Assembly (NCBI GenBank): GCA_043228905.1
Contig: JBHGNT010000012.1
Span: 17,608,001-17,672,000, forward strand
DNA length: 64,000 nt
Source of the DNA: Azolla caroliniana
Taxonomy: Eukaryota; Plantae; Polypodiophyta
Direction: 5' to 3'
Below, one piece after another: positions 698-37,378 of this stretch. Position numbers and translations under genes: made by a program. Every line of letters starts with the position of its first letter. Position 1 is the first letter of the stretch. The notes under the pieces are model-generated. The model searched no databases and was not told the DNA's origin. It saw nothing but the letters and a program-made list of their open reading frames with translations.

Positions 698-1045
698 TCA
701 TAGTCCCATATTTGTCCTTAGTGCTTCAAAGCGTTGATCTAGGAGTGGCTTCGTTAGGAAATTGGGGATGTTCACCTCGGTGTCAATCTTCCAGACTTCG
801 AGCCTCTTCTCGGTTATGAGCTCCCGAATGTGATGATACCGTACCTCAATATGCTTTTTCTTTGCATGATAAACAAGATTGTTGATGAGGTGTATTGCGC
901 TCTGTGAATTGCAGTAGATGGTAGGCGTTGGTCGATCGATTCGGCCTGTAGCTGAAAAATCGGCAGACAATCGGTGCAGCCAGGTCGCTTCCTTCACTTC
1001 CTCTGATGTTGCTATGTACTCGGCCTATGTGGTCGACAGGGACGT
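698..1045 (-). pseudogene. Ty1/copia RNase H C-terminal fragment
   Basis: Translation TSLSTT*AEYIATSEEVKEATWL...IYCNSQSAIHL...HAKKKHIEVRYHHIRE...NIPNFLTKPL matches copia RNase H motifs. Cut at 1045 by element A. Confidence 0.9.
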
Positions 1046-1182
1046 TGTGGTGATGTGGCATGTCTAGTGCGACAAAAAGTCAAAAATTGAGGATCCACAC
1101 ACATTTCACGAATACTTGTAAAAATGAAAATAAATAAACCTAGGTCGCAATCGCATTGAGTGCATGTAGAGGGTTGCAAGTA

Positions 1183-1237
1183 GGATTTGAACCTTGCACC
1201 TCTAAGATAAGAGGTAATTACCTTACCACTAAAGCTA
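1183..1237 (-). promoter_or_regulatory. tRNA-like Pol III A-box/B-box cassette in family A 5' LTR
   Basis: The minus strand reads TAGCTTTAGTGG...AGAGGTGCAA-GGTTCAAATCC. The T8-to-G53 distance is 45 nt, as in tRNAs. Confidence 0.7.
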
Positions 1238-1733
1238 CTACTAAGTGCTTTGGATGTTCTATATTTCTTTCTCATATTCAGTATTCCGTAGGAAACAAAC
1301 AAACAAAACCGTGTACACAAAACCACGGTTTTAAGCCCATGGTTTCCTGCATGTCACAAAGCAAAACTGTGTGCACAGATACCATGGCTCCAAGCCCATG
1401 GTTTTGTGCATGGAAAAACCTATAAAACCCTTAGTACGTCTTGTGTAAGGGGGGGGCTCAATATGATATGACCATCATCATCACCATCAATAATATAAGC
1501 TTCTATTTCTTCTTCTTCACATCTATTTCTTCTTCTTTGCATCTATCTTGTAATTATATATCTACTTCTCAAGTGTACAATCTTCAATCTTCTCAAGTGT
1601 AATAGGTCTCTCCTCCAATCTTACATTCACATCGTCCTCTTCTCAATACCTTGACGAACATCCTCCTTGGTCCAAGACCCCGGTGGTCCCGCTCAAGCGA
1701 AGCATGCTCGCACGCGCATCTTCGCGACATCTT

Positions 1734-1751
1734 TGGTGAACCCGACGTGAA
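1734..1751 (+). promoter_or_regulatory. Primer binding site, tRNA-Trp
   Basis: TGGTGAACCCGACGTGAA is complementary to the 3' end of plant cytosolic tRNA-Trp (...TTCACGTCGGGTTCACCA) and starts 4 nt after the LTR. Confidence 0.9.
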
Positions 1752-1766
1752 GAGCGGTAAGGGAGG

Positions 1767-4109
1767 ATGAAGATGGACGAGGAATATCTAATGAAGGCAA
1801 TGTCAAAGATGATGATGGAGTTTTCAAGAGAATCGAAAACACGAGATGCGGCCCAACAAGCCGTTGAAAGCATGATCAAGCGAGTCGGGTTTTTCGATGG
1901 AGGCAAAGTCCAAATATTTCTAAAGGCCTACAATGCCGAAATGGATTCAAGGGGAGTGGAGGAAGCAATGAGGTTGGAGTACTTTTGTCGAGTGGTGGCC
2001 GAACCGATCTTCGAAGAGATTAAAGAGATTCAAAAAATTCACGATTCGTGGGTGTCCTTCAAAGAAGCTTTATGAGAGTCATATGGTTACCAAGAGCAAA
2101 AGGGACGAGGTCTATATGAGTTTCACGAATGGGTGTCATCGAGAAAGACCCACCAAAGTGCTATGCATGCATTCGTTGAGTTTGAGTATCGCTTCGCTCA
2201 ACTCTCGGACTAGGATCGAAGATTGGTGGGGGCGAATAAAGTTCCGTTGTTTGTAAAGTCAATCGATCGGAATGAAAGGAAGGCCATTGGAATCCAACTC
2301 GAGGATGAGAATGGTGAAAATGGCCTCACTGAGGATTGGGCCAAAGTGGAAAGGGTATGCCGACAACACGATAAGAGGGAGATGAGATTCTCATTGACAA
2401 TAAAACGACCCACAAGGGATGTTTAAAGGAGAATGGGATGTGGCAATAAAAACCCACCGAAGGAAGAAAGCTCGAAGAGGGAAGCTTCGACAGAACTCAA
2501 CATAGAAGCCTTGATGAGAGAGGCATTCATGAACTTAAAGGAACAAGTCCAAGTTGAAGAGAAGCTGAAAACAAAACTGAGGAAAATGGTGATCGACGAA
2601 GAGGAGACCTCCCGACAAATGCAGACTAATGATGCGGCCAATACGAAGGCCCAAGTTCGGTATGATAGTACCATGGGAGAAGGTGTGAAACAAGCCACCT
2701 TCTCGAATTATGGAGGAACGACGGTCAAGAGAAAGGCCGAAGACTCGAGAGCGGGAAATGCTGCTTTAAGAGTGGACGGGCATTTCGGAACACATGTTGT
2801 GTCCGAAATATCGAGTAATGAAGGTGCAAGCATGAGGGAAGCTTGCGTGATCAAGTGATGTAAAGAGTGTGAGGTCGACATGATTGAGGCGGTAGCCACG
2901 AGGAACGACATCGTGTCGCAGATGGCTAAGGAAGATTCCATGGCGAATGACCGTGTCGAGACTTTCCCAACACTTGATCTAGAGACTTGGGCAGTTGCGT
3001 CCGAGAGCCAACATGAGACCCAAGAGACAGAAAGTGGCGGGGAAGAAAATATTGAAGACAATGCGAATAACAACATTGAGCGAAAGATGGCTATGGATGA
3101 GAAGACGGTGACCGATGGTGTTGAGGTTCTCACCACAATTGTTCCTGAGACTTGGGTAGTTGTGCCCGAGTGTCAACGTGGGACCGGAGAGATGGAAGGT
3201 GGTGGTTGGAAATCGAAGGACTGAAACGACGATGAGGAGGATGGCCACAAACGAAGGAATCCCTCCACACCAATTCTGGAGACTTCGGCAGTTGTGCCCG
3301 AGAGCGAACATAAGACCGGAGAGATGGAAGGTGGTGGCGAGGAGATGAGGGTCGACGGCAGCGCATACGGAGGAACGGTGGCCAACAAGGACGCCAAAAA
3401 CAAAGCTATAATAGAGTTTGATGAAGAGCCAGATAGCGGCAAGAAAGGAAGAACCGGAATACGATCCAGATGGAAGATGACGCGGTTGGTATTCCGACCC
3501 GAACGGAAGCCGACCCGAACGAGAGTTGATCAACCGGGCCCAACCCAACCGAAAACCGGATGGAAACTGACCCGGATGAAAGTCGATAATCTGAGTCCGA
3601 TTCGGCCGAATGCGAATCCGGACGAAGGCCGACCAAGCCAGAAGACGATTGGTCGAGATAGACAAAATTTGAACCGGCCTAGACGGAGGTCGAAGTAGAC
3701 GAGCCGCGACACCCGGTCGAGGCTAGTGAGCATAAGGAAAGGCAAGCATGAGACGAGAAAAGATGATAAAGGAAAGTTAGGTGACCAAGGAGATGGCCGA
3801 GATGAAGCTGGCACATGCACGAGGCATGAAGCGTTATGCTCGGGAGGAGCAAAGGGAGCCATGACAACTAGACCTGGCAATAAAAAAGGTGAGCAAATGA
3901 TATGGTGGATCGGATGGCAACGACAATTCGAAGTAGACGACAACAAGACGGTGCGAACGAGGCGCAAGAAAGGAGGAAATCAAACACCAACCACCTTTGA
4001 CCCTTCCACATCACTCTTTTCTTCTTGGCACATACCAGAGGATGTGCGGTTTGGTGGGGGTGGATGTCGTGATGTGGCATGTCTAGTGCGAGAAAAAGTC
4101 AAAAATTGA
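1767..4109 (+). pseudogene. gag: Gag-like ORF with a long low-complexity extension, broken only by in-frame stops
   Basis: ORFs starting at 1767, 2223, 2433, 2880, 3294 and 3726 share one frame. The N-terminus (FDGGKVQIFLKAYNAEM...DSWVSFKEAL) resembles a retrotransposon capsid. Confidence 0.7.
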
Positions 4110-4201
4110 GGATCCACACACATTTCACGAATACTTGTAAAAATGAAAATAAATAAACCTAGGTCACAATTGCATTGAGTGCATGTAGAGGGTTGCAAGT
4201 A

Positions 4202-4256
4202 GGATTTGAACCTTGCACCTCTAAGATAAGAGGTAATTACCTTACCACTAAAGCTA
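4202..4256 (-). promoter_or_regulatory. tRNA-like Pol III A-box/B-box cassette in family A 3' LTR
   Basis: Same cassette as 1183-1237. Confidence 0.7.
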
Positions 4257-4962
4257 CTACTAAGTGCTTTGGATGTTCTATATTTCTTTCTCATATTCAG
4301 TATTCCGTAGGAAACAAACAAACAAAACCGTGTACACAAAACCACAGTTTTAAGCCCATGGTTTCCTGCATGTCACAAAGCAAAACTGTGTGCACAGAAA
4401 CCATGGCTCCAAGCCCATGGTTTTGTGCATGGACAAACCTATAAAACCCCTAGTACGTCTTGTGTAAGGGGGGGGCTCAATATGATATGACCATCATCAT
4501 CACCATCAATAATATAAGCTTCTATTTCTTCTTCTTCGCATCTATCTTGTAATTATTTATCTACTTCTCAAGTGTACAATCTTCAATCTTCTCAAGTGTA
4601 TTAGGTCTTCCTCCAATCTTACATTCACATCGTCCTCTTCTCAATATCTTGACGGACATCCTCCTTGGTCCAAGACCCCGGTGGTCCCGCTCAAGCGAAG
4701 CACGCTCGCACACGCATCTTCGCGACAACGTACAGAGCTTGCTCCTATGATATTACTCTCACTCAGAATGATCTAGGTATCTCTCCTCTCTGCCGAGGTA
4801 CGCAAACCTCGGTTTATATACTTTTTCTTCATACAGAGCCGAGCCGTCAACTGACTGTGAGGCTCGAAACTTGGCGTTTTCCTACAATGTACCTTCCTCA
4901 CCTACTCTCCTTACCTACCAGCATATTTAACTAATTTATATTTCTAGCCTATGGACAACACC

Positions 4963-4978
4963 TGGCACGCCCGTGGGA
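4963..4978 (+). promoter_or_regulatory. Inverted PBS (tRNA-Arg 3'-end mimic) in the PPT position of family F
   Basis: The plus strand reads CAACA-CC-TGGCACGCCCGTGGGA. On the element strand this is TCCCACGGGCGTGCCA-GG-TGTTG (start of 3' LTR). No purine tract is present. Confidence 0.75.
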
Positions 4979-5076
4979 TAGGACTTTGTCCGTTGGACCC
5001 ACGGTTCACCATGGATTTGGCAAAACAACACGAATCACAAAAATTGCCCGTTCCTACGAGGGCTTATAGGTTGGTT

Positions 5077-5394
5077 TTATTCCTCTTCCAATATGTCGAG
5101 GATATCCTCGGGGGCGTGGGGTTGGTCTGGCTGCTCGGCAGGTGGGGTTGGTGATGGAGGGTGTGTTGCCGAGTCGGGGATGGCTGTGCCGATGTGTGCG
5201 GCCTCCTCTATTGGGATTGGTTCAGGCAGGGTCGGGGTTATAGTCTGTGGCTCCGGTGGGATGTGGAGGTCTGCAGGGGCAGGCTCCTCTGGTTGAGCTG
5301 CCGTGGGGAGTGACTCGGTTGGGATGTGGAGGTCTGTAGGGCTAGGTTCCTCCGGTTGAGTTGCCGTGGGGAGTGACTTGGTTGGGATGTGCAA
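5077..5394 (-). other. Extra Pro/Glu-rich ORF in the 3' region of family F, with 60-bp repeats
   Basis: About 2.5 copies of DLHIPTESLPTAAQPEEPAP lie between integrase and the 3' LTR. Confidence 0.45.
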
Positions 5395-5717
5395 GAAAAT
5401 GTCTATGTGTGGGGTGTGCTTGGGGTAATTGTTTTTTAGCGAACGCCTAGGGTTTTGTGCATGAAGAGGAGCCTAGAGATTCTTGATCATGGATGCCATA
5501 ATAGGATATTATGGCCACGTGTCCTAGGGAGTTAGTGTTGTGCCTTGGATGCTGTGCATGTGCCTTTAAATACTTAAGTGAATGTGAAAGTGACTAGTGC
5601 GTGCCTCTAAATATGACGTGATTTGGGTGATGTGGTAGGTGGTTTAGGTGGAACTAACTAATTGCTAAAACTATGCCTAATCCTACTTAATGTCTACGTT
5701 GGAATGTTGGTGGGTTC

Positions 5718-7208
5718 TTACCGAGGGGTATGCGTGGCCTCCTTCGTGGCATTGTCCGTGCCGTGAGACTCGGCGAAAGGGTTGGCTGGGGTATTTCCCT
5801 GGTATGGTCGCAGTCGGAATCCATTCACCCAGCTTTTGACAATTTCCCCGGCGAGGGTGCCGAGCTGGAACATGCCGTTAAACTCGTCAATAATCCAGAA
5901 GGGGCCGGTCCATCGAAATCGTAACTTTTCTGGCATAGCATCGAGTCGTGTCTGGAAAACGAGGATCGGTTTGCCTATGGTCAGTTCTTGTTCCAATCCT
6001 TTCCATTGTCAGTCCACAAAGGCTTTCCGTTGTCGTTGGTGCTGTTCAAGTTGGGCCATGCTCGCTACTCGGTCCTCGCCAAGTTCGAGGAGTTGTTCCA
6101 GCCTCAATTGTTCGTATTGGGCCTTGGGGAGCCGTGCTTTAACTTGAACTCGGAGACTCGGAACTTGGAACTCGATGGACATAACGGCTTCGAGACCAAA
6201 AGCCATCTGAAAGGGGGTGGATTGAATGCTCGTTTTGAATGTAGTGCAATAAGCCCATAATGCACTTTGGAGCTTGTCATCCCAATTGGTGCGGTTCTCG
6301 TTAACGATCTTCTTCAGGATTGTTTGGAGAATTTTGTTTGTCGATTCTTCCAATCCGTTTGCCTACGGGTAGTATGGTGTACTTTTCTTATGTACAACTG
6401 TGTAGTGTGTCGTAAGCTCGCGTATTATATGGTTTATAAAGTGCCCACCTTGGTCACTAACGAGCTCAATTGGGCATCCATAACGGCACCAAAGATGTTC
6501 GTACACGAATTTGGTCGTGGATGCTGCCATGTTGTCTCGTAAAGCCTTTGCCTCGACCCATTTTGTGCAGTAGTCCGTGACCACGATGATATACTTATTA
6601 CCGGTTCGGGCCGCGGCTGGTTTGAAGGGTCCCACAAAATCTAACCCCCATTTTTGAAATGGTTCCAATGGAAGAATGGGTTGGTGTGTCATTCGAGCTT
6701 GTTCCATCGACTATCCCAACTGTTGGCACAAGTCACACTGCCAACAGAACTCGTGGGCATCCTTTTTCGTTGTAGGCCACCATAACCCACTCTGCCATAC
6801 TTTCCTTGCCGTGAACTCTCCGGCGTAGTGTCCACCGGTGATTCCTAGGTGGGCCTTCTTCTCGAATTGTCGAATTGCCCGTCGCCATATTCCATCTGAG
6901 CCTTTGTGGTAGAGGATGTCGGAAACGAGACAAAAGTTTCGGCTACGTACTACGAGTCGTTTCTGCACATCGAGGGCCATGTGGTCGGGAGGCAGGCCAG
7001 TACTAAGGAAATGGGTCATCTCCGTGATCCATTCATCTTCTTTGTCGTCTGGCAGCGTTGTGAGATGAAATAGGCTAGCATCGCGTAAATCGTCATACGT
7101 GGACTCGGTAGGGTCTCCTGACTCGAGGCGGCTTAGGTAGTCAACGACGGCGTGTTGGACTCCGGGTCGATGCTGTATATGAAAATCAAACTCTTGTAAT
7201 AGGAGCAT
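5718..7208 (-). pseudogene. pol: Ty3/gypsy integrase (zinc-binding, core and GPF regions), interrupted
   Basis: H...GHY...CDLCQ, PFQKWGLDFVGP, VSDQGGHF, WTGPFWI. Confidence 0.9.
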
Positions 7209-7388
7209 CCATCAAGCTAGTCGACCTGTCAGGGCTTGTTTATTGACCAGGTAAAGGAGCGCTGAGTGATCGGCGTGAAATGTGAATTTTCGGCCTAAGA
7301 GGTAATGCCAAAATTTACTGATGTTGTAGATCATACCGGGGGCCTCTTGTTCGGTGGTTGAATAGTTCTTTTCCGCGGCCGAGAGACG

Positions 7389-8432
7389 TCAGCTAGCATA
7401 ATACACTGGCCGATACCAATTTGGGGGCGTGCATTGCATAAGTGCGCTCCCGATGGCGATATCTAATGCGTCCACGAAGACGTGAAAAGGTTCTGACCAT
7501 ATCGGGGGCTGCACAATTGGGGCATGTGAGAGCATTAATTTCAAACCTTGGTAAGCCTCATCCTCGATTGATGTCCATTGAAAGGGGAGTTGATGCACTA
7601 TCGCGTGTAGTGTTGTCGCGAAATCGGCCAAGTGGCGTATCATCCGGTTGCGCCATCTAATTTGTCCCAGAAATCGGCTGAGGCCTTTTGCGTTCGAGGG
7701 TGCGGGGGCGTTTAGGATGGCTTGTACTTTATCAGGGTCCATGGCGATACCTTCTTGACTGACGATGTGCCCGAGTAGGTTGCCGCTTGTGACCAAGAAC
7801 ACGCATTTTGCCGGGTTTAAACTTAACCGAGCCTGGTGACATCGATCAAGATAGAGATGTAACTGGGTCATGTGTTCCAGTCGCTGACCATATACGGCGA
7901 AGTCATCGAGAAAGACTTGCATGAACGCCGGGATATACTCATTAAAATTTTTGGTAATGATGCGTTGGAACGTGGCCGACGTTGTTTTTAAACCGAACAT
8001 CATTACTTCTGCCACGAAAACACCCCATTCCGTGACAAATGTTGTTTTCTCCTGATCATCCAGGTGCATTCTGATTTGGTTGTAACCACTGAACCCATCT
8101 AGAAAGTTGTAGCATTCATGACCTGCCACCGTGTTGAGAACGCTATCCGTGAACGGGAGAGGGAATCCATCCGTGATCGTTGTAGCATTAAGATTGCGGT
8201 AGTCGACGCAGACTCGGATTTTCCCGTTTTTCTTGGGGACGACTATGATTGGGCCTAACCATGTGGCACGTTTTACAGGCCGTATGAACCCAACTCGGAG
8301 GAGCTTGTCTATTTCTTCCTTGACCTTAGCCGCATAATTGGGGTTCATCCGGTATCGTCTTTGCTGAACCGGCCAAGCGTCAGGGAGAAGATGGATCTGG
8401 TGTTGGTAGTATTGAGGGTCCAAACCCTTCAT
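7389..8432 (-). pseudogene. pol: Ty3/gypsy reverse transcriptase and start of RNase H
   Basis: PKKNGKIRVCVDYRNLN, LDGFSGYNQI, MMFGLK, VFLDDF, FHVFVDA. Confidence 0.93.
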
Positions 8433-11161
8433 ATCTGTGTAAGACCATGCGAATACATCCTGGTAATCGGTGAGTAAGTGTATGAGGGTTGCTCGTTCGT
8501 CGGCTGGTAAGTTATTAGCAATCTGTAGGGTGTGAGGGTTCTCGTTCGAACCGAGGTTCAGTGTTTCGAGCGTTCATGCCTTCACTCGTTGGGAGATGGT
8601 GACTTCACGTTCAAAAGAGTCCCGAGCGTGTCGTAATTCTGTGATGGTGGTGGGATCGGGCTCATCCTGGGGAGGTGTATTCTCCGTGACCTCCTCGTCT
8701 AGAGGTGTGCCGACGGCCGACATGGCGTCGATTTCGAAGAGAGGTATGATAGTGGGATGATCTTCTAGGAAGTCATCCACCTTGTCATCGGCTAACCCAT
8801 TGAGCATGTGCACCCCTTCTGCGTATAACGGTGAGGTGTTGTGGGGCGTGGTTACGCGTTCTTCGGTTATGATCCGGACCTTGGTCTTTCCTCGGCGAAA
8901 CGAGATCATGTTCGCTGCCAATGTTGTTTGATATTTACTGTGTGCAACCATGGTCTGCCCAGTAACATTGGGTAAGCCCCTTGTGGTTCGAGTCGTGATA
9001 CAATGACCGAGATAGTGAACATGTGGCCTCCTAGAGTAAAGTCGAGGTGGCGAATTAATCCGATGGGGCGAACCGATCGTGTGTCGGCCATCCGAAGCCA
9101 AAAGGGGCAAGGTTCCCATTGATTTAGGCCGAGTTTATGATAGGTAGCCTCGCTAATGACATTCACGCCAGAGCCGCCATCGATTATGCACATGTGCAGG
9201 TCCCGTCCTTTAATCATAATTTTTATGGTTGGATTCTGCGCATCCATGAGGGGTGGACCCGTTCCTGGCTCGGTCAGGTGCACAGGTGGTGCGGTGGAAT
9301 GGGTGTTGGCCGTGAGTGTAGCCAAGGTGTCCTGAAAATGCGGCATGAGTGGTAAGAGTTTATGCAGAGGCAGGGAGATCCTGGAACTGGTAAGGGCGTC
9401 CCACAGCTAGTCATCTTCTGTCAACGTGGATGGTGCTGAGGACTGTGTTACTCCGATGGTCGCGTCTCCCATTTCTGTTTGCATTCGCACCACATTGTTT
9501 TTGTTGGCCGTATCAATCCATTCTTTGGCTGCTTGCCGGACTTCATCTTGTATTTGCCATGGGGTGGCCTGGGCTTTACTGCGTGTTGTGACATTTTGCA
9601 CGTTGGCCATAATACTATTCACGGCAGGAGCCTTTCCACGGTCTGTTGTTGGGCATTACGTAGCGTAGTGACCGGGTTGGTTGCACTTGAAGCAGGTAAC
9701 GTTGGTCGAGTTGTTGGTGCTAGCCTGATCTGTGTGTGGGGGGGGTGCAGTTGATTCTCGGCCTCGTGTGTTGGTGGGTTGGTCCAGGGCACGTTCGAGC
9801 TGCACGGTTCATTTTGCGGGGGGTCCCGATGACGGTTGTTGCGCGATCCTCGGTGAGAGTTGCGCCGATCATTACGGGAATTTCTCTGATCGTATCGGTC
9901 ATCCCGATCATCTTCATTCCGATCATAATCGTTGTTTGCCCGATACTGGTCATCGTGATAGCGATCACGGTGGTCGTCTGATCTCCGTCGGTTGTCGTTT
10001 CGGTAACAGTCGTCGTCTCAACGGTAATCGTCATCACGGCGCCGTCTATCTGGCGATCGGGGTCGTTGGTTATCTTGGTTCCGGTAGGATTGTCTCTCGT
10101 CCTGACGTGAGTATGTATCCCTGGACTTGATCTTGTGAACCGGGGCCATCATTGTGCGGTTGAGCATATTGTATTCACATTGCTCGACAGTGTGAGATCG
10201 GGACTGGCAAATCGGACACTGTGGCCGGTGAGGACATTCAAGGGCTAGATGGCTCGATCTCGAGCAAACTATGCATTGGAGGCTTGGCGGAAGCGATTGT
10301 CCTCCTGGGGAAGGGCGCTTTGCAGTGAACTCATAGAGAAAGTCATGCTTTGCTGAGTCCGATCGAGGGCAAGGACGCGCGCTATGACTTGCTCGATCGT
10401 TTGGTTGGCAAAATTAGTAAGTGCGAGAGTCATCCGTAGAGGCTCCCGTTAGCTGGACAGGAATGCGTCTGGAATGTGCTGTGCGGAGACATCGTCGGCC
10501 ACTTGTCTGTAGAGATCCCAGAACCGGATCATGAACTGTGTGACCGTCTCGTGCGGTTCTTGTCACATGGAAAAGAACCGTCGGAGCAATTCTCGTTTGG
10601 GCACCTCACGATGGAATAGTTCTAGGAACTGCATGCGAATGTCGTGGAAGGTGAAAAAATCCCCTGTGTCGAAACGAGAATACCATCGCACAACTGGTCC
10701 ATCGAGGGATAGCGTAAACTCGGCAATTTTTGAGGCCTCAATTTTGGTAGGCAAGAGTCGCTCTGTTGAGTGGTTGGCCTGCCAGGTGGACACGAAGGCA
10801 CGGATGTGCGACTCCGCGTCGGGGTTGTCGGTGTATCGTGGGTAAGGATACAACATGGTATCGAATTCGGGATCTTCCGGTAAAACTTGAAACGGGTTAG
10901 GGTCAGGGTGGGTGACCTCTGGAGGGCTTGGTGGAGAGGTTGGTGTGGAATCAACTCACGACCGAGTAGCAGGTGGCGAGGATTGCAACCGGTGAGCCTC
11001 CGATATTTCTTGGAAAGACTGGTCCGTGACCGCCGAGTCGGAAGTTCCTTCGACTGGCTAAGGGCATCGACCAGATGGCCGAAACCGCTTGGTGCGATTG
11101 GGGGCCGTAATGGCGACTGAAGGTTGCCTTCAACGTAGTTCGCTGTGATCTCACAGCTGTA

Positions 11162-11174
11162 ACCGGGCATGCCA
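11162..11174 (-). promoter_or_regulatory. Primer binding site, tRNA-Arg type
   Basis: TGGCATGCCCGGT lies 5 nt inside the 5' LTR boundary. The sister copy has TGGCACGCCCGGT at 47900-47912. Confidence 0.75.
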
Positions 11175-11446
11175 AATTGTGTTATCTGTTCCTTTGGAAA
11201 ACACCTTCGATGAGCCCATAGGCTATCGGTGTCAAGGGATCGTGTTACATGGAAGCTTCTTCTACACGGGAAAAAAGAGAACAAGGATCGTACACGGGCT
11301 ACAACCCGTTAAGTATGAACGTAGCCTGAATTATGAGTACGGGGAGAATACACAGCTAGGAGTTTAGAAAAGACGAAACTTATATTCCATGATAAAGCTT
11401 ATAGTGATTACAGTATTCGGCCTCAACCGGAAACAATATGTACAGA

Positions 11447-11519
11447 GCATCCCTTCCTCCCTCGTTCGAGACCCCCATGGTCCCGCCCTTTTGACACGCA
11501 CACTCGTAATAACGCGACA
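11447..11519 (+). mobile_element. 3' tail of a family E LTR
   Basis: Matches 42793-42866 (GACCCCC.TGGTCCCGCCC...AACGCGACA) and resembles the family A LTR end. Followed by ACGT. Confidence 0.7.
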
Positions 11520-12149
11520 ACGTGTCTCGATTTCATCACATGTTGGCTATTTGATGTTATGATTTTTTTAAATATACGCATATGTGGTCACATGTATACG
11601 TATTTGATTGTATGTATGTGATAAATATACATATGTGTATGTTAGTTATTAGTAATTTCTATATCGAATGTTGTCCTTTTTGGGGAAAGGATCTTGGTGG
11701 CTGTCCTCACATTTTTGTGAGAATGACGTAGTCACCATCCTTTTTTCAACAATTATTTTTGTTGACATCCCCGTTGGTCACTTCAATTTTGTTACGTAAC
11801 GAAATGCTCTTAGCCACAATGATGTTGAGAAAGTAGGGCTTGACCCACTTCATGTGAGGTTGCTCCTAGGACACACATATCCAACATCCCTCCCTCATTA
11901 CATGCATACGATGCCACCATGAGATCATTCTTACGAAAGGCATTCGTAATGACGTAACCATGTGATGGGCTACGTGGGCCTACTACGAAAAGAGGGCTCA
12001 TTTGGCTTGACCATTAGGTTGCACTTTGGCGTATGCCATCGTAATTAGGAGACATGAATGAGGTTTGGTAACGTACCGACATCGTTTGTGGTAAATGACA
12101 GGGAAATAAGGACTCCTTATGTATATGTTTCTTTTAAAAAAACATATAT

Positions 12150-13060: not shown

Positions 13061-13872
13061 TGTTGGGAGACAGGTCCCTCCGGATGGGAAGAGAGAAGAA
13101 CAGTGCCGATGAACAAACTCGGCCGAGGCCGAAACCGGGTGAGGAGTACCCGGCTACGGAGAGCCGGATGGTGCAGACCCGGTGAGAACCGGATGAGGAG
13201 TACCCGGCTACGGAGAGCCGGATGACGCAGACCCGGTGAGAACCGGATGAGGAGTACCCGGCTACGGAGAGCCGGATGACGCAGACCCGGTGAGAACTGG
13301 ATGAGGAGTACTCGGCTACGGAGAGCCGGATGGTGCAGACCCGATGAGATCCGGATGAGGAGTACCCGGCTACAGAGAGCCGGATGGTGCAGACCCGGTG
13401 AGAACCGGATGAAGAGACATATTCGTAAATATGTTTCTGAGAGTCCATTGAGGCTATATTTGTAAATAGACAAAAATTCATATTAGTATAAATATGACTT
13501 AGGGCAAACTTTTAGTTACTGTTGTTGTTATTATTTCTTGTCTGCGTGAGATCAAAGCGCGTAACAGTGTACAGAGAGAGAGAGAGAGAGAGAGAGAAAG
13601 AGGTTGTTGCCTCTGTTGTAACTGCCGCCTGTGGCGAAGATCGTGAGCACGAGGTCGTTGCCTCCGTGAACTCACTGCTGTACATACTAATCTAGTGATA
13701 GTTTGCAGCCTGTGGGCTGCCGTGGTTTTTCCCTAGTTTGGGGTTTTCCACATTAAACATCCTGCGTACTCTTCTCTTCCATTGTGTCGTTCTTTATTTC
13801 CCATTTTCTGTGTATGATCCTAAGCTCGGTTGTGGCCGAGCATTGCGTATAGGGAGCGTTCAGTTCTCGTCA
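13061..13872 (+). mobile_element. Solo LTR inserted in family D gag
   Basis: TG...CA termini with TSD GATTG (13056-13060 and 13873-13877). The gag frame K-I-A-Y-V-G resumes after it. Confidence 0.9.
13132..13413 (+). repeat. 54-bp tandem repeat, about 5.2 copies, in the solo LTR
   Basis: Unit GAACCGGATGAGGAGTACCCGGCTACGGAGAGCCGGATGACGCAGACCCGGTGA. GAGGAGTAC recurs at 13141, 13195, 13249, 13303 and 13357. Confidence 0.95.
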
Positions 13873-16551
13873 GATTGCATATGTCGGCTAAGAACTAGGG
13901 GGTAAAGCTGCCGCATGGTGGTGTGGGCTCCGAACTTTGGGGAAATTGCCCAATACCTGGACAGATTTTGTCATAGTTTTTAAGAGCCATTTTCTGCAAC
14001 CTCCCTCTTGAACTGAGGCAACTCAAGCTTTAATGAACCTCTCTAGTAGGAAGTTTTCCTTGCTAGAAGAATATGTTCACTGTGCTAGAACCCAAATCCA
14101 AAAATCGGGCCTAGTAAGGGACAAATAGTTAATAGCTTGTTTTGTCAATGTCATCCCCAATTCGGACTATCACTAGATAGTTCACGATAAGGATCCAAAA
14201 TCCTTTGAAGAGGCAATTGAAATAGTTCTTTGCTATCAACGCACTTCGAAGAAGGACCATAACTAACCCAACGAAGCGCCCGTGACTAAGCAGTCACAAT
14301 TCACTAGGAAACGCAATACACCCAACGAATTCGTAGATTGCGATTGTAAGCGACAATATCCTTTTTGCGTATTCTGCAAAAAGAAGGGTCATATAAAAGA
14401 ACAATGTCGAAAGCTCCAACGCAAAGAGCACGACAACAAAGAAAAGGTTGCAGACCATAAAGGTCAAATTGCTAATGTCCTTGAGGTCTATACGCATCAT
14501 TTAAGTAATTGTCAATGTTCGTTCCCTCACTATGTATTGGAACCCAATGATTTAGTACGTGCAAACGGGTATATCAATGGATCTCCCGTACAATTTTTAT
14601 TTGATTCGGGAAGCTCACACGATTTTGTCAATGATCGTTTGGTTCAGATATGGGGAATCCAACCTACTGTAAGTAATCACACCTATAGGCTGCACTTTGC
14701 TGATGGACGAGTACAATACATCAACGAGGCGATTTATTCATTAGGAATTTCTATTGATACTTATATAGAGGAAGTAGACTTCCATGTAATGAATCTTTGT
14801 ACCATTAATGTAATACTGGGTTATCCCTAGTTTTATAATAAAAACTCTTCTTTATCTATTGATTGGGTTCATCATTCAATTACTTTTGTATTGAACGATT
14901 GTACTCATTTTATTCAATGTGTTAAAAAACAATCTCTTTCGATTGTTTCCTCGCCATCAATATTTGAGTTGTCTTGGTCTTCTTTATTTTATTATGTACT
15001 GGATCCGAACAATTACGTTTATAATATTGATAACGTCTCGGGTCAATTTACATATTTTGAACAACAACAACTCGATAAAATCTTAAATGATTTTCATGAT
15101 ATTTTTCCGAGTGAACTACCACATGGGTTACCTCCTTAATGTAATATAGACCATCATATAGATATTGTACCTGGCGTTGCACCAATAAGTATACCTCCTT
15201 ATCGGTTAAGTCAATTCGAAGAGGATGAGGTATCTAAGCAACTCAAGGACTATTTGCGAATGGGTTATATACGTTATAGTAAATCTCCATGGGGTGCACT
15301 TGTTCTCTTGGTAAAAAAGTAAGAGGGCTCATGGCGTATGTGTATTAATTACTGACACTTGAATAAAGTGATGTATCCATTGCCTTGGGCTGACAATCTA
15401 ATTGACCGTCTCTAGGGAGCACGATATTTTACGAAACTTGATCTACGTACGGGCTACCATCAAATTCGTATAAGTGAGGACGATATTCCTAAAACAACAT
15501 TTCATACGCGTTATGGCCATTATGAGTTTTTGGTTATGCCTTTTGGCTTGACCAATGCTCGGGCCACATTTCAACAAGAAATGAATGACATTTTCCGAGA
15601 ACAACTTGGAAAATTCATCGTTATTTTCTTGGATCATATTTTAGTTTATAGTCGAACATTAGAAGAACATGCTAAACATGTCCGCTTTGTTTCACAAACA
15701 TTGCGTGACAAACATTTTTACATGAAGATCTCAAAATGTGAGTTCTTCAAGAAATCAATTACTTATCTTGGGCATCTCATAACCGAACAAGGAGTTGAAA
15801 TTGATCCTTCTCGCATCGAGAAAATCAAACTTTGGCCCACTCATCGATCAATCCTTGGTTTTGTTGGGTTTTTGTGAAAATCCCTTCATAATTACTCCCA
15901 ATTGACGACGCCGCTTACAGATCTTCTAAAAGGTCAAACACATAAGTCTACAAAACCTATTGTGTGGAACATGAACACTGTCGCTGATGCACTAAGTCGT
16001 AAAGGTTCCATGAGCATTGTCATTGATGCACTAAATCACATCCATGAAGTTAACATGCTTAGCTTCATTGAAATAGCATCAGATCTTTATGATCACCTTC
16101 GAGGAAAGTATCCTGATGACAGTTATTTTGCGAAATACTGGGCAAGAGTTGAGTTTAGAACAGACATCACCACAACCTCGAAGGAATCCTTCCACATTGC
16201 TAACGGTCTACTCCACCGTAATGGGAAGGTCCGTGTTCCAGATTTGCCTAAGTTCAAAAAGAGAATTTTGTTTGAATGCCATGATGCACCATCAGCAGGG
16301 CACCCTGGATTACATCGCACACTCCTTCTCATCTCCACTTAATTCTATTGGCCTAAGATGTATCCTGACATACATAACTATGTGACTAAATGTCACCAAT
16401 GTCAAGTTAACAAAGCCGAGCGACTTAAAGCCGGAGGACCTTTACATCCCTTGGACATTCCCAATAATAAGTGGAAAACCACGGTAACAGCTCCTGAATT
16501 GGCTTACCAATTCGTTGATGAGTTATTTCGTTTTTATGGGTTATCGATGGA

Positions 16552-17568
16552 TATCATGAATGATCGAGATCCAAAGTTTACTAGTGACTTCTGGACACAA
16601 GTTTTCAAGAAGTTAGAAACTACATTGAGCATGAGCTCGACGGATCATCCTCAATCCGATGGACACACATAACGAGTAAACCAAATTATTGAGGACATGC
16701 TTCGAGCATACGTTGGTGCAAAACCAACAAAATGGGAACATTATCTCCCAATTTTGGAGTTTGCTTATAACAACTCCAAGCATACGTTGACGGGATATAG
16801 TCGTTTTATGTTGATGTATGGGTTTCAGCTACGAGCCCCAATTGAAGTACGCAAAACTTTCTTCGAGATATTTCGGGATATGCAAGATATGTTGCATATC
16901 GTGAGTGATCGAGATCCAAAGTTTACTAGTGACTTTTGGACGCAAGTCTTTAAGAAGTTAGAAATGACGTTGAGCATGAGCTTGACAGATCATCCTCAAT
17001 CTGATGGACAGACTGAATGAGTAAATCAAATTATTGAGGACATGCTTCAAGCATACGTTGGTCCAACAAAAAGGGAACGTTATCTCCTAATTTTGGAGTT
17101 TTCTTATAACAACTCCAAGCATATGTTGACGGGATATAGTCGTTTTATGTTGATGTATGGGTTTCAGCTACGAGCCCCAATTGAAGTACGCAAAACTTTC
17201 TTCGAGATATTTCGGGATATGCAAGATATGTTGCATATCGTGAGTGATCGAGATCCAAAGTTTACTAGTGACTTTTGGACGCAAGTCTTTAAGAAGTTAG
17301 AAATGACGTTGAGCATGAGCTTGACAGATCATCCTCAATCTGATGGACAGACTGAATGAGTAAATCAAATTATTGAGGACATGCTTCAAGCATACGTTGG
17401 TCCAACAAAAAGGGAACGTTATCTCCTAATTTTGGAGTTTTCTTATAACAACTCCAAGCATATGTTGACGGGATATAGTCGTTTTATGTTGATGTATGGG
17501 TTTCAACTACGAGCCCCGATTGAAGTACGCAAAACTTTCTTCGAGATATGCAAGATATGTTGCATATT
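16552..17568 (+). repeat. Tandem triplication (345/339 bp) of an integrase core segment
   Basis: GATCGAGATCC at 16562, 16907 and 17246. Copies 2 and 3 are almost identical. Confidence 0.93.
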
Positions 17569-18546
17569 GCATGAGATAATATAAAAACAGCTCAAGATAG
17601 AGCGCCTTTTTACGCCGATCATAATAGGCAACCTCATGTATTCAACCATGGAGAGAAGGTATTTTTACGTGTACGTCACAATTCTAAGACGTTGTGTACA
17701 GGTAAGTGCGCTAAGTTAGCCCCACGGTTTTGTGACCTTTTCAAGTCCTCAAACGCATTGGTTCATCAATAGATCATGTCGCTCTTCCCAATGTCGTTGA
17801 AATTCATCCATTTTTTCATGTAAGTCATCTAAAAGAACTTCTAGGTTCCGACGACAATACAGTTATAACTGAAACTCTGGTTACTTCTGAAGAATTATCT
17901 TCTAAACCACATGTACCAAAAAGAATTCTCGATGTTAAAACAAAAAATCTAGGTACTAAGATAATCTGAGAATTTAAAATTAAATGGATGGATAAATCTA
18001 TGAAAGATGCCACATGAGAACACGAAAATACTCTTAGAACTAACTTCCCTAACTTTCCATTTCAAGAGTGCAATGTTTTAAAGAGGGGGAGTATGTTACG
18101 GGCATGACCATATAATATCCTGTGGTGAGAATTTACCATAGTATTCTATACACGTGGATAAGTGTGAGGGTTAAATGAGAGTGTAAAGAAGGGGAGGATT
18201 ACTTTTAATCCTCAGGATTGAGATAACCCATTAGGCCAAGTGTGAACTTGCCTGGGGGCCTTGGGTATCGTTATAAATATGAGACCTAACTACCCTCATT
18301 TCATCATCTTTTGACTAGGTCGAGACTCTGATGTTGTGGTGGGTCAACTATTGTAGCGAGTGCACCAGCACCAAGTATGACTCGACGCCACAATGGTGGT
18401 ATGGGACGCCGATCGAGGCTCAAGTCCGTTTGGATCCCTTCGCTTGGGGGTGGTCGGGTGGATTGGCACCCTTCTTTCTCTCGTTCCTTTCTATCTATCT
18501 ATCTTTTATCCTTATCATACGCTTACTTTAGATCATAACTCTAACA

Positions 18547-19345
18547 TAGTTTATGACCTTTGTGACCGTAGAGGTTGTGAAAAGTGTCCCCATGGTAGGT
18601 CGAGGTGTGAAGGGCATGGGGATGGGTGGTTGGTTTGGGACGTGGTAGAGTTTCTCTGTATATGTGTGCCAAGTGTTGGGATCCTCGATGGGTGTTTGTG
18701 GTCTCGGTTCCCGTTGTCTCTTCCATGCAAGGGCGTAATCCCTACTCATGAGCATGTGATAGAGTTCCCAATATTAAGACCTTTCCCATGCTTGTCGTTT
18801 ATGACGTGTCATCTTTCACATCTCTTTGCAAGCTTGTACTGAGGAAATAGTACCATTATGTTGCAACACATTAAGTTGTTTATACAAGTCTCTACAATCC
18901 TCATCATACCACTTGTTCTATGGCATAGAACCTATTCTACTATGATTGGAGTGTTTCGTGTATGGGAAGCTATTGATTGTTGTTGAGTGAAGGATGTGTG
19001 TGAGTTCTATAGTGAGGTACTCTAAAGGCAGGGAAGGATCAAGAGAGGAGAGATGGGCTTGAACATGTCGGGAGTAGATGTATAGAGCTCATGTGTGAAA
19101 TGTATTGTGGTGTGATGGTTTGGTTGACAAGGGTTGGTGGCATTGGAGGTGTCAATTTAGCTCAAAGTATAGGAAGTTATGGTCGGCACCAATAGGGCAT
19201 GGGGCCACTCGGAAGGAGTTAATCATGTGGGTAGCTTCAGGGCGATCTATTAGGTAATCAACTGTGCTTTCCCCTCCTCCATGTGGGAAACATGTGAGCT
19301 CTTCCGAGCCCGGCCACTTCGTTAAGCCATTATATACGATCATCT
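18547..19345 (-). mobile_element. LINE ORF2 fragment (AP-endonuclease C-terminus and linker)
   Basis: TCFPHGGGESTVDYL...GADH and WYDEDCRDL motifs on the minus strand. Confidence 0.75.
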
Positions 19346-27302: not shown

Positions 27303-30070
27303 TGTCAGATCTTATGTCTAATGTAAGCATATGATAAAGATAAAAGATAGATAGATAGAAAGGAGAGAGAGAAAGAAAGGTGCCGATCCACTCGACCACC
27401 CCCAAGCGAAGGGATCGAGATAGACTCGAGCCTCGATCGGCGTCCCTTACCACCGCCATGGTGTTGGGTCGTACCTGGTGCTGGTGTGCTCGCTACAAGA
27501 GTTGACCTACCACAACGTTAGAGTCTCGACGTAGTCAAAAGATGATGAAATGAGGGTAGCTAGGCCTCATATTTATTGCGATACCCAAGGACCCCAGGCA
27601 AGTTCACACTTGGCCTAATGGGTTGTCTCAATCCCGAGGATTAAAAGTAATCCTCCCCTTCTTTACACTCTTGTTTAACCCTCACACTTATCCACGTGTA
27701 TAGAATACTACGGTAAATTCTCACCACGGGATATTATATGGTCATGCTCGTAACATACTCCCCCTCTTTAAAACATTGCACTCTTGCAATGGAAAGTTAG
27801 GGAAGTTAGTTCTAAGAGTATTTTCGCGTTCCCATGTGGCATCTTTGATAGATTTATCCATCCATTTAATTTTAAATTCTCGGATTATTTTAGTACGCGG
27901 ATTTTTTGTTTTAACATCGAGAATTCTTTCTGGTACATGTGGTTTAGAAGATAATTCTTCAGAAGTAACCAAAGTTTTAGTTCTAACTGTATCATCGCCA
28001 GAACCTAGAAGTTCTTTTAGACAACTATATATGAAAAACTGGATGAATTTCAGCGCCATCCGGAAGAGCGAGACGATAGACTAATGAACCAATGCGTTTG
28101 AGGACTTGAAAAGGTCCACAAAACCGTGGGGCTAACTTAGCGCACTTACCCGTTGACAATGTCTTAGAATTGTGAGGTACACGTAAAAATACCTTCTGTC
28201 CAAGGTTGAATACACAACGTTGCCTATTGTGGTCGACGTAAAAACGCGCTCTATCTTGAGCTCTTTTTATATTATCTCATGCAATATGCAACATATCTTG
28301 CATATCCCAAAGAAATTTTTGCGTACTTCGCAACTCATTATGATGTATATTAACATCAATCGGGGCTTGTGGCTAAAAACCATACATCAACATAAAATGA
28401 CTATATCCCGTCGACGTATTCTTGAAGCTGTTATAAGCAAACTCTAAAATTGGGAGACAACATTCCCATTTTGTTGGTTTTGCACCAACTTATGCTCGAA
28501 GCATGTCCTCAATAATTTGATTTACTCATTCCATCTGTCCATCGGATTGAGGATGATCCGTGGAGCCGATGTTGAATGTAGTTTCTAACTTCTTAAAGAC
28601 TTGCGTCTAGAAGTCACTAGTAAACTTTGGATCTTGATCACTCACGATATCCATCGGTAACCCATAAAAACGAAATAACTCATCAACGAATTGGTAAGCC
28701 AATTCAGGAGCAGTTACCGTGGTTTTAATAGCAATAAATCTGGCCATTTTAGTTAGTCTATCAACCACAACCCAGATGGCATCATGGCCTTTTTGGGTGC
28801 GAGGAAGGCTAACAATAAAATCCATGGATATACTTTCCCACTTATTATTCGGAATGTCCAAGGGATATAAAAGTCTTGTGGCTTTAAATCGCTCGACTTT
28901 GTTAACCTGACATTGGTGACATTTAGTCACATAACTATGTATGTCAGGACGCATCTTAGGTCAATAGAATTGAGTGGAGATGAGAACGAGTGTACGATGT
29001 ATTCCAGGGTGCCCTACTGAGGGTGCATCATGGCATTAAAAAAGAATTCTCTTTTTGACCTCAGGCAAATCTGGAACACAAACCTTCCCATTATGGTAGA
29101 GCACACCGTTAGCAATGTGGAAGGATTCCTTCGAGGATGTGGTGGTGTCTATTCCAGACTCAACTCTTGCCCAGTATTTCACAAAATAACTATCATTAGG
29201 ATACTTTCCTCGAAGGTGATCATAAAGATCTGATGTTATTTCAGTGAAACTAAGCATGTTAACTTCACGGATGCGACTTAGTGCATCAACGACAGTGTTC
29301 ATGAAACCTTTATGATATCGTATGGAAAAATCAAAGTCTTGGATAAGATAAGCCCATCGTGCCTTACGACCTTTTAGGTCTTGTTGGTCATAGAAATATT
29401 TCAAGGACTCGTGGTCCGTAGTTACCACAAAACGATTTCCACAAAGATAATGACGTCATGTTTTGAGCGCATGTATAATTGCAAATAATTCCTTTTCTTG
29501 AATAGTATACCGACATTGAGTAGAATCAAGTTTCTTACTCTCGAATGCTATTGGTTTGCCATCTTGATATAACACAACACCTATAGCATAATCGCTTGCA
29601 TCGGTTTCAACCTCAAAAGGTTTTGATGGATCGGGTAAAAGAAGCGAAGGAGCCTTGCACACCAGGTCCTTGAGTTCCTTAAAGGTGAGGTCTAGTGTAG
29701 CATTCGACACAATAGGTTTTGTAGACTTACGTGTTTGACCTTTTAGAAGATCATTAAACGGCGTCGTCAATTGGGAGTAATTACGAAGGGATTTTCGCAA
29801 AAACTTGACAAAACCAAGGAATGGTCGAACTTCTCAAATATTCCAAAGAGTGCGCCAAAGTTTGATTTTCTTGATGTGAGAAGGATCAATTTCAACTCCT
29901 CGTTTGGTTATGAGTTGTCCAAGATAAGTAATTCATTTCTTGAAGAACTCGCATTTGAACTTTTAGAAGATCAGTAAACGACATTGTCAATTGGGAGTAA
30001 TTATGAAGGGATTTTCACAAAAACCCGACAAAACCAAGGAATGATCGAACTTCTCCAATATTCTGAAGAG
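27303..30070 (-). mobile_element. Chromovirus family D copy 2 (3' half)
   Basis: 3' LTR 27303-27755 (453 bp, same length as 18094-18546), PPT, chromodomain, integrase (KWESISMDFI), RNase H (FEVETDASDYAIG) and end of RT with a local duplication. Confidence 0.92.
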
Positions 30071-30162
30071 TGTCAGGAATAGTACTAAGATAGAGAAGAA
30101 ATTAGTACTAAGAGAGGAATATTAGTACTAAGAGGAATAGAGGGTGTAGAACACTCGAGAGA

Positions 30163-30236
<74 letters not shown>

Positions 30237-31900
30237 GAGATCGAGGGAGAGAAAATGATGATGATAGCGATATATTATGTGAGAAGAATATACAAGGAAG
30301 GCTAGGAGGCTTAAGACTGGCGTTAAACCGATTTGGTTCGAAATAATGCCTTTTATAGTGTTCTTAGGAGTAGTCCTGAAGCTTCTAGAATGTTCTAGAG
30401 AAATCTGGAATATACATTAATTTTCTATAGTAAAACTTAAATAAAAATAATATTCTTCATATTACAATAGATATTGTAATGGTCAAGTGCTCGACCCATG
30501 TAACATAAGGTCATGGGTTCAAGTCTTGCCATATCATGACATTATCCCCCCTTTAAAACGACGAGTGTCACAAGTCGTTTTGGATTGAGGACCCGGTTTA
30601 TCTGGATATTGACGATGGAAGTCATGAAGAAGAGCACGAGCATTGGTCACATTCTCTATTGGTTCCCAAGTACGCTCGCTAGGACTATATCCTAGCCAAT
30701 TGACTAAATAGTAGAGCTTGTTGCGAACAATCTTGGAATCGAGGATGGTGGCAACCTCGTACTCAGGTCCATCATCAAGTTCGATCGGGGGTGGAGGTTG
30801 TGGAATACGACCTGAGATTTCTGTCTTGATAGGGTTCGAGGAGAGAACTATGGAACACCGGATGTATGCGAAGTTGCGGGGGTAGATCGGGATGAAAAGC
30901 GACATCATTAATCTTTCCGATAATATGGAAAGGACCTAATTGTCGATAATCCAACTTCTCGCATGGGTGAGTAGTCTTGATGTGTCATCATAGTAGCCAT
31001 ACCCGATCTCCAATGTTAAAACTGGATGGAAGCTGATGACGATCCGCGTAAACCTTGTGTGTTTGTTGAGCTTGTTGTAGATGAGTAGAAAAATTTGCTT
31101 GTATCTTGCGTAAGCTCCAAACGATCCTCTACGCAAGGATATATTGGTAACTCTAGGGTTTCAAATACACACCATCGGGTGTGACAACCCATATAAGCAT
31201 AAAATGGCATAACTTTAGTCGATGAGTGGACAGAGTTATTATAGGCAAATTTGGCTAAGTCGAGAATATCCGCCCAATCATCTTGATGATAGCTTAGAAA
31301 GCACTGAAGATACTGCTCCAGCGTTTGATTTGTTCGTCCTGCTTGGCCATCGGTTTGCGAGTGGTAGCCGGAGGAGAGGTTACAAGTGACTTTGAGCATT
31401 TTAAAAAGGTGCTTCCAGAATTTCGAGATGAATTGGGGTCCACAGTCACTGATGATATTATTAGGAAGGCTATGATGCCGACATACTTCACGCATGACAA
31501 TTTCGGCGGTTTCTTCATTGGAGATTTACTTAGTACATGGCAGGAAATGAACCATCTTCCTATATCGATCTACTACTGTTAAAATCACATTGAATCCCTT
31601 AAAGACTGGAAGATCTGAGATGAAATCTAGAGAAATGGATTCTTAGGGCTTGCTTGAAATTGGTAATGGTTCTAATAAACCATATGGATAATGCCTTGGC
31701 ATTTTTGCTTTGCAACATGTATCACAAGTCCAAACAACATCTTCGACAAATTGTCGCATACAGGGCCACCAGAATGATCGTTATACTAAATCTAATTTCT
31801 TAGTACTACCAAAATGCCCAGTTGTATATGTGTCATGACAGTTTTGGACTACTCGAAGGCGGCAAGAACCATTAGGAACATACAAGAGTTTCTTAAAGAA
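30071..31900 (-). mobile_element. Tcn1-like chromovirus, family C copy 1 (3' part)
   Basis: LTR 30071-30541 (TGTCA...TGACA), PPT, chromodomain EYEVATILDSK...YLVNWLGY...TWEP, and integrase core. (GA)n at 30165-30232 inside the LTR. Confidence 0.9.
30472..30526 (+). promoter_or_regulatory. tRNA-like A-box/B-box cassette in family C LTR
   Basis: TATTGTAATGGTCAAG...AAGGTCATG-GGTTCAAGTCT with 45-nt spacing, antisense to the element. Confidence 0.6.
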
Positions 31901-36960: not shown

Positions 36961-37378
36961 TGTTAGAGGGTATACCGTTAGATTAGGGTTATCGGTTTTG
37001 TAGAAAGTAGCGTGCGGAAGCAAGTATGAAGACCGAACAGAAGAGAGGAAACTCAGGTTTAATGGAGAGCTTGAGCTTACACGGTATACGCAGGAGAGAC
37101 AGAGAGAGAAACACAAAAAACTATATTCAACAATAACACTCAGTCTGTACATAAGACGTGCTCAGTGAGCACTTTTATACAAGTCCTAGAAGGACTGACC
37201 GAAGTACTGACAGTACTTCAATGCTCATCAAGAGCTCCTACACTAACTCCCAAATATATTCCTCACGGAATATCTTTCCTAACGACCTCCCGGTTTATGC
37301 ACTCGGCCTAACCGATCGGTCCCAACCGATCCGGTCCTCGGCTTCTTCAGCCGATCCGGCCGATGTTGAGCTTGTCTC

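Follow-up and report, generated by a model that had tools for sequence, protein, structure and literature searches.

To our knowledge, all retroviruses and LTR retrotransposons are taken to prime the plus strand at a polypurine tract (PPT), which serves annotation tools as a hallmark of such elements. The plus-strand tract of Ty1 is short and imperfect, and the 5′ and 3′ ends of the Ty1 genome pair through CYC5 and CYC3; Tf1 self-primes with the 5′ end of its transcript, and Tf1 elements still have a PPT. In hepadnaviruses, the plus strand is primed by an RNA oligonucleotide translocated from DR1 to DR2, and tRNA-like 3′ ends with CCA are found in the Mauriceville retroplasmid and in plant RNA viruses. 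For Ty3, whose PPT is GAGAGAGAGGAA, a review gives the PPT rule together with a primer-binding site (PBS) in two parts, the second segment of which lies in the 3′ U3, is complementary to arms of the tRNA and binds this tRNA within genomic RNA (PMC5371799). A 2019 survey of plant LTR elements, which mentions self-priming, catalogued PBS types but gave no such list of PPTs, and no fern is named in its text as a source species (PMC6317226). No account of a copied tRNA end standing in for a PPT turned up in the searchable literature, which leaves much of the field uncovered.

The 64-kb stretch of Azolla caroliniana DNA analysed here (the window) holds a decayed minus-strand Ty3/Gypsy element, with many stops in three-frame translation, that carries such a copy at the junction with its 3′ LTR. 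The motif is conserved in relatives, including intact ones from other plants, and points to an undescribed way of starting the plus strand. The element, its sister copy and the features that adjoin it are arranged as follows; L024 and L025 are two close relatives and L004 a distant one.

1046-4727, plus strand: element A, a separate LTR element flanked by 4-bp ACGT that adjoins the 3′ LTR fragment (LTRs 1046-1729 and 4065-4727, 95% identical)
4732-4960, minus strand: 3′ LTR fragment, LTR positions 1 to ~237, which starts TGTTGTCC and has a TATA-like AGTATATAAACC (alignment to L024 and L025)
4961-4962, minus strand: 2-nt spacer from CCA to LTR, GG in the window, L024, L025 and L004
4963-4978, minus strand: copy of a tRNA-type 3′ end with CCA (TCCCACGGGCGTGCCA), an 'anti-PBS' in tRNA sense (related motif in relatives)
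4971-5004, minus strand: 7-bp hairpin arms overlapping the motif (minimum-energy fold, z -0.7)
4979-5079, minus strand: 3′ untranslated stretch and stop codon (5077-5079) of the tail ORF (from the sequence)
5080-5472, minus strand: proline-rich C-terminal tail ORF, 131 amino acids (translation)
5380-5390 (near 5389), minus strand: breakpoint of a ~3 kb internal deletion by which the family's extra ORF was lost (relatives' alignments)
5721-10955, minus strand: decayed gag (from 10955), protease (near 9100), RT (8573-7392), RNase H (7388-7215) and integrase (down to 5721) (three-frame translation and domain matches)
11162-11174, minus strand: PBS TGGCATGCCCGGT, which differs by one C-to-T change from the PBS of L025 and of the sister copy
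11175-11448, minus strand: 5′ LTR fragment, LTR positions ~229 to end (alignment to the whole LTR of L025)
11449-11516, plus strand: last 68 nt of an A-type LTR, adjoining the truncated 5′ LTR (alignment; 86% identity to 42797-42867)
47900-48459, minus strand: sister copy, with PBS 47900-47912 and 5′ LTR 47913-48459, 3′ part missing

The domain order gag, protease, RT, RNase H and integrase is that of Ty3/Gypsy, and a tRNA-type PBS follows the 5′ LTR. Homologues carry RVT_1, RT_RNaseH and RT_RNaseH_2, and Integrase_H2C2 is present; among the distant relatives described below, Ty3_capsid was matched in L001 and L005, and L001, L003 and L005 each have two LTRs and a target-site duplication. We obtained no match to a chromodomain after the integrase. 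The extra RNase H domain of archaeal type that marks the Tat clade (Ogre, Retand, TatI-III) was looked for as an RVT_3 or RNase_H match in the ORFs on the integrase side of L004, L001 and the window, and none was obtained there. The elements are non-chromovirus Ty3/Gypsy with a long 3′ region and an unannotated ORF. The window copy is defective, combining the ~3 kb internal deletion and its many stops with two partial LTRs. Its proline-rich tail ORF contains 63-nt tandem repeats (5247-5372), and the distance from stop codon to motif is about 100 nt.

At the 3′ LTR junction, positions 4953-4978 read GGACAACA-CC-TGGCACGCCCGTGGGA on the plus strand and TCCCACGGGCGTGCCA-GG-TGTTGTCC on the minus strand. 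The preliminary description of this DNA had reported TCCCACGGGCGTGCCA-GG-TGTTG before the minus-strand 3′ LTR, and this sequence is indeed present at 4978-4956; its further statement, that the CCA ends 2 nt before the LTR where no PPT is seen, is borne out in the window and in the relatives. The motif extends over the final 16-17 nt of a tRNA-type 3′ end, its CCA is encoded, and the exact 15-nt pattern has a single occurrence in the window. It is the reverse complement of the PBS, that is, in tRNA sense. The family PBS, TGGCA(T/C)GCCCGGT, occurs at 11162-11174, at 47900-47912 and in L025; the two window sites, TGGCATGCCCGGT and TGGCACGCCCGGT, respectively, had been correctly placed on the minus strand. 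To judge by the family's own PBS, the tRNA type of motif and PBS is probably tRNA-Arg. The family motif is one C short of what its own PBS predicts (CAC-GGGCG versus ACCGGGCG), so that only 10-11 nt would pair without a bulge. Between the LTR end and the TGG of the PBS the gap is 1-3 nt, which mirrors the 2-nt gap from CCA to the LTR.

Read on the other strand, the motif is formally a PBS, with TGG 2 nt from the LTR end, about 16 nt of tRNA complementarity and, in the window family, the same tRNA type as the real PBS. Unlike a 5′ PBS, it lies at the 3′ LTR and faces the opposite way, and a tRNA could bind it only in minus-strand DNA, not in genomic RNA. The bipartite PBS of Ty3 is similar in that a tRNA-related cis element is located at a distance from the PBS, at the genome's 3′ end (PMC5371799), but the motif here is tRNA-sense and outside the LTR, and the tRNA complementarity of the Ty3 3′ segment is not found. 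As with the PPT of retroviruses and LTR elements, the motif is directly upstream of U3 and its 3′ end would set the left cDNA end; unlike a PPT, it is not purine-rich and has the sequence of a tRNA 3′ end with CCA. Hepadnaviruses, the Mauriceville retroplasmid and plant RNA viruses offer further likenesses in their non-PPT primers or CCA-ended polymerase start sites, but these are unrelated elements with other chemistry and position, and no tRNA-like fold is detectable here.

Folding searches were consistent with this last difference. ARAGORN returned no tRNA gene or tRNA-like fold in the window and the 10 loci scanned, and Rfam gave no tRNA match at E up to 10; a sub-threshold Rfam ribozyme match (E 0.88) was disregarded. 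A hairpin had been proposed to overlap the site. Its arms, CCGTGGG (4971-4977) and CCCACGG (4998-5004), exist and pair in the minimum-energy fold, but that fold is no better than those of shuffled sequences, and the hairpin does not recur in the distant relatives, with L024 and L025 pairing otherwise. The motif is a copy of the tRNA end only, not a cloverleaf or an acceptor/T-arm mimic. A second GTGCCA-AG-TGTTGG stands in the window at 18666-18676 (plus strand), where the upstream sequence is tRNA-like for only ~8 nt and no pol is nearby; it may be a remnant of another element of the same kind.

No PPT accompanies the motif: in seven of seven elements, purine runs in the 60 nt next to the LTR reach no more than 4-8 nt and none adjoins the LTR itself, and purines make up 53-60% of the last 15 nt. 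For the window copy, the earlier remark that a purine run is lacking agrees with a longest run of 4 nt in the 60 nt before the 3′ LTR. Three other LTR elements in the window have G-rich or purine-rich tracts that abut their 3′ LTRs (GGTGGGGGTGGA, GAAGAAAAAGAAAGAA and GAGGGGGAG). Element A has a PBS-like site and a G-rich tract at its 3′ LTR, and in an Athila-type control, L028, a PBS of the Asp type goes with a normal G-rich tract.

The two LTR fragments of the window copy need a separate account. Positions 4732-4960 show no similarity to the copy's own 5′ LTR (z 0.5), and no similar sequence was found elsewhere in the window; on the plus strand, moreover, the junction reads ...CAACA-CC-TGGCACGCCCGTGGGA, a textbook LTR-PBS junction. 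These features would suit a scenario already raised in the preliminary description, namely that 4728-4978 belongs, as 5′ LTR and PBS, to a separate plus-strand element that became fused to the Gypsy, here a truncated one on the minus strand. We consider this scarcely credible. The fragments are dissimilar because they are non-overlapping parts of one LTR: the whole family LTR is ~490 nt, the window 3′ LTR covers about 237 nt of it, and 4732-4960 is 74-78% identical to the LTR starts of L024 and L025. This alignment upholds the identity and orientation first assigned to 4732-4960, although the likeness of 4890-4960 to the sister LTR that had been cited for them is not significant (z 1.9). In L025, the sequence runs from that same LTR start through the whole LTR to the U5 end, the PBS (TGGCACGCCCGGT) and a leader 90% identical to window 11033-11239. 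The tail ORF, UTR, motif and LTR start follow in the same order in other copies, and complete relatives with target-site duplications show the same layout. The fusion is thus contradicted by L024 and L025, by the complete relatives and by the bridging contigs described below.

The 3′ LTR fragment ends at a 4-bp ACGT (4728-4731), the repeat that flanks element A, and with only two LTR fragments a target-site duplication is not readable for the window copy. The fragments overlap only in the 9-nt GTACAGAGC (4731-4739 and 11440-11448), and each adjoins the 3′ end of an A-type LTR followed by ACGT (4660-4731 and 11449-11520). As the origin of this pair of complementary fragments, neither two separate insertions nor a permuted one-LTR circle nor a 70-bp duplication gives a fit.

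Several observations place the junction in a family rather than in one damaged copy. First, we placed contigs from four public runs, representing three organisms, on the window at 80% likeness. Positions 4734-4895 and 4806-4939 proved to be repeated among other genomic copies, and a contig of a different copy, with 14 mismatches, spans 4943-5080 and hence the LTR start, the motif and the UTR; a further contig spans 5033-5188. All four runs show a rise in summed contig depth at 4903-5036, and in one organism many contigs diverge just past 5003. Because contigs of other copies bridge it, the junction between motif and LTR is a family feature, not a local accident.

Second, we recovered 18 close relatives via the integrase end, among them L006, which is 94.6-95.6% identical. 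The alignments of 17 of the 18 to the window stop at or before ~5380-5390; all ten relatives inspected past ~5390 enter a Pro/Ser-rich stretch, which in nine of them is followed by an extra ORF. This ORF lies after pol in close relatives that are full-length (L006:4534-5649, L009, L011 and L015) and starts MPLAASQETRSWLQERGLGGYLKV...; the ORFs at the corresponding downstream place in the distant L001 and L004 gave no Pfam match. L024 and L025 were found by searching with the tail ORF. The upstream part of L024 overlaps the extra-ORF region of the close relatives and joins it to the tail, the motif and the LTR, and L025 joins the LTR to a PBS and leader of the window family (family F), which ruled out a chimera of two families at ~5389. 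Judged by these alignments, the window copy is one family with a ~3 kb internal deletion.

Third, L024 and L025 share with the window a near-identical module of ~50 nt, ...GGGTCCGACGGACAAAGTYCTGTCCCACGGGCGTGCCA-GG-TGTTGTCCAT. Across the three family copies this module is conserved above its flanks (57/60 versus 77%, L024 versus L025, P 2e-4). In L025, positions 1-1913 comprise a 3′ internal region, a single LTR and then PBS and leader, a layout that might reflect a tandem array or a one-LTR circle, or else the path that an assembler took through a collapsed LTR.

Fourth, a search with the RT piece yielded four more distant elements, at 54-60% RT identity, with the following 3′ LTR junctions.

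L001: LTR identity 85%, target-site duplication TGTAG, junction ...CCACCAGGTGTGCCA-AG-TGTTGG
L003 (Adiantum nelumboides): LTR identity 88%, target-site duplication GAAAT/GAAAC, junction ...CCATCGTGCGTGCCA-AG-TGTTAC
L005: LTR identity 97.7%, target-site duplication CCTGC, junction ...CCACCGAGCTGTGCCA-AG-TGTTAA
L004: 5′ LTR off the contig, target-site duplication not readable, junction ...CCGGGCGTGCCA-GG-TGTTGA

Loci left out as uninformative were L002, whose contig is bacterial, L026 and L027, which have no pair of LTRs in reach, and L029, which has no 3′ junction. The LTR boundaries of L001, L003 and L005 are fixed by the target-site duplications, and the motif is outside the LTR because the 5′ flank differs from the motif in these three elements, which have both LTRs. 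In the window, the two close relatives and the four distant ones, the CCA stands 2 nt before TGTT, with AG as the spacer in L001, L003 and L005, and each of six loci has exactly one occurrence of the pattern GTGCCARGTGTT, every time at the 3′ LTR junction. Other copies do not have the ordinary PPT that the preliminary description had named as counter-evidence: L024, L025 and the distant relatives all carry the motif without one. Only GTGCCA, the R-G spacer and TGTT are invariant across the five families. The bases upstream of GTGCCA vary, with indels, and are still tRNA-like (CCAC/CCCA, then a G+C-rich acceptor-type strand). This likeness to tRNA is kept in five families with RT identity near 55% and with very different flanking UTR and LTR sequences, and the motif is present, reading CCGAGCTGTGCCA, in the young relative L005. 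What is directly observed is the anatomy together with its conservation, the lack of a PPT and the exact boundaries of the LTRs.

Such persistence bears on whether the motif does anything. It might be a functionless fossil, produced for example by aberrant reverse transcription into the primer tRNA, with the plus strand starting from an unrecognised short or distant purine stretch; the short, imperfect tract used by Ty1 gives that idea some footing. We nevertheless give it little credence: the 2-nt distance is the same in five families whose RT identity is near 55%, as well as in a young copy, whose LTRs are 97.7% identical, the motif is conserved above its flanks, and no purine run longer than 8 nt is found within 60 nt of the LTR, with none abutting it.

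The relation between motif and PBS bears on another proposal of the preliminary description, PBS pairing by the motif so as to circularise or self-prime the RNA. The PBS could be that of the same RNA or of a partner; pairing would circularise the genome, as CYC5 and CYC3 do in Ty1, or, after a cut at CCA, self-prime the minus strand, as in Tf1. In L025, PBS and motif are complementary over 11 contiguous bases, and in this respect the 3′ sequence of family F resembles the Ty1 and Tf1/Sushi systems; in the window copy, the C-to-T change in the PBS cuts the contiguous complementarity to 5 bases. The PBSs of L001, L003 and L005 (TGGCGA..., TGGTGACC...), by contrast, are of other tRNA types and offer only 3-4 contiguous complementary bases, yet the motif still reads GTGCCA and its position is kept. 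Because the complementarity is not kept in these three complete relatives, pairing with the PBS is disfavoured as a conserved general function, which weakens the proposal. Pairing would also leave the plus-strand start without a PPT and the fixed 2-nt distance to the LTR unaccounted for, and we regard it as improbable. Compared with the Tf1/Sushi type, moreover, the PBS here starts with TGG and is of a tRNA type, and the complementary stretch sits in the 3′ UTR.

We infer that the motif primes, and consider it probable that it is the plus-strand start site, with a primer that ends at CCA. CCA and TG are 2 nt apart, as many bases as integrases usually remove, and this gap mirrors the one on the PBS side, so a primer whose 3′-OH is the A of CCA would fit. 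That the tRNA itself is this primer is a more tentative reading, to which we would give somewhat less than an even chance. Our working model, held with the same reserve, is of a start site in a non-chromovirus Ty3/Gypsy group that lost its PPT, at which packaged tRNA-Arg would prime the plus strand. Both cDNA strands might then be primed by host tRNA, one on the PBS of the genomic RNA and the second, tRNA-Arg, on a mirror-image site in minus-strand DNA, with no need for an RNase H-resistant polypurine primer; we hold this full version a shade more cautiously still.

In outline, the motif would be the product of reverse transcription over the final 16-17 nt of a mature tRNA, CCA included. Minus-strand DNA made across it would contain a second PBS-type sequence, 2 nt from the U3 complement, to which packaged tRNA-Arg would anneal. 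The 3′ A of the tRNA would be extended through GG into U3-R-U5, RNase H would then remove the plus-strand tRNA primer, as it does the minus-strand primer, and integrase would trim the 2 extra bases. The encoded CCA and the 16-17-nt extent would be the product of copying a mature primer tRNA up to the T-loop, and the same tRNA would presumably already be in the particle, the PBS of the window family being of the same tRNA type.

The anatomy fits equally well if the primer is the element's own RNA, of which a genomic fragment is already in place without an extra factor. RNase H would spare the motif in the RNA/DNA hybrid and cut after CCA, making it a tRNA-derived, non-purine equivalent of a PPT. 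Known RTs match their own PPT/U3 junction specifically (PMC5371799). The cut after CCA is one that RNase H already makes when it removes a tRNA primer, a second tRNA annealing step is not needed, and what stays invariant on either side of the presumed cut is GTGCCA, the R-G spacer and TGTT, with variation and indels upstream. We know of no RNase H-resistant primer of mixed sequence, however, and the persistence of tRNA-likeness over 16-17 nt would need another reason; in L001, L003 and L005, the tRNA type of the PBS differs from that of the motif, and one removal specificity must fit two sequences. On its own the genomic RNA primer seems somewhat doubtful. We rate the tRNA primer slightly above it because tRNA-likeness is kept over 16-17 nt where the flanks are unalignable, and consider the genomic RNA nearly as likely because the matches are imperfect and the core at the cut is invariant. 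That only GTGCCA is invariant and that L005 reads CCGAGCTGTGCCA could also mean that a cleavage site is recognised, in place of one tRNA being annealed.

If a tRNA-end copy has replaced the PPT in a successful plant group, the plus-strand priming step would be evolvable, and these elements would provide a natural system for how RT and RNase H choose and remove primers. The motif also bears on the old idea that CCA-ended, tRNA-like ends mark replication starts. A practical consequence is that LTR-finding pipelines for which a PPT is mandatory will miss some of these abundant fern elements or score them wrongly.

The rest of the window contains further elements and repeats. Element A and element B, the latter at 31895-34900 (plus strand) with a purine tract at its 3′ LTR, are small, with 2.3-kb interiors and no pol noted inside; their PBS, TGGTGAACCCGAC, is presumably of the tRNA-Trp type. 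To the left of A lies the end fragment of a Ty1/Copia RNase H, at 700-1045 (minus strand), which reads ...STT*AEYIATSEEVKEATW...HAKKKHIEVRYHHIRE... and is cut at the A insertion. A Copia frame that appeared to run across element A into 4732-4746 covers only 5 codons there, other LTR copies cover 4734 onward, and we treated it as chance. The young element at 36999-42401 (minus strand), with LTRs 99.2% identical, is probably a Copia element; it has the GAGGGGGAG tract before its 3′ LTR and an initiator-Met-type PBS, TGGTATCAAAGC, at ~42003-42014. Five copies of a 54-nt tandem repeat occupy 13079-13416, and a large inverted duplication (15734-18538 and 27312-30072, 82-92% identity) includes internal tandem repeats of ~340 bp at 16548-17567.
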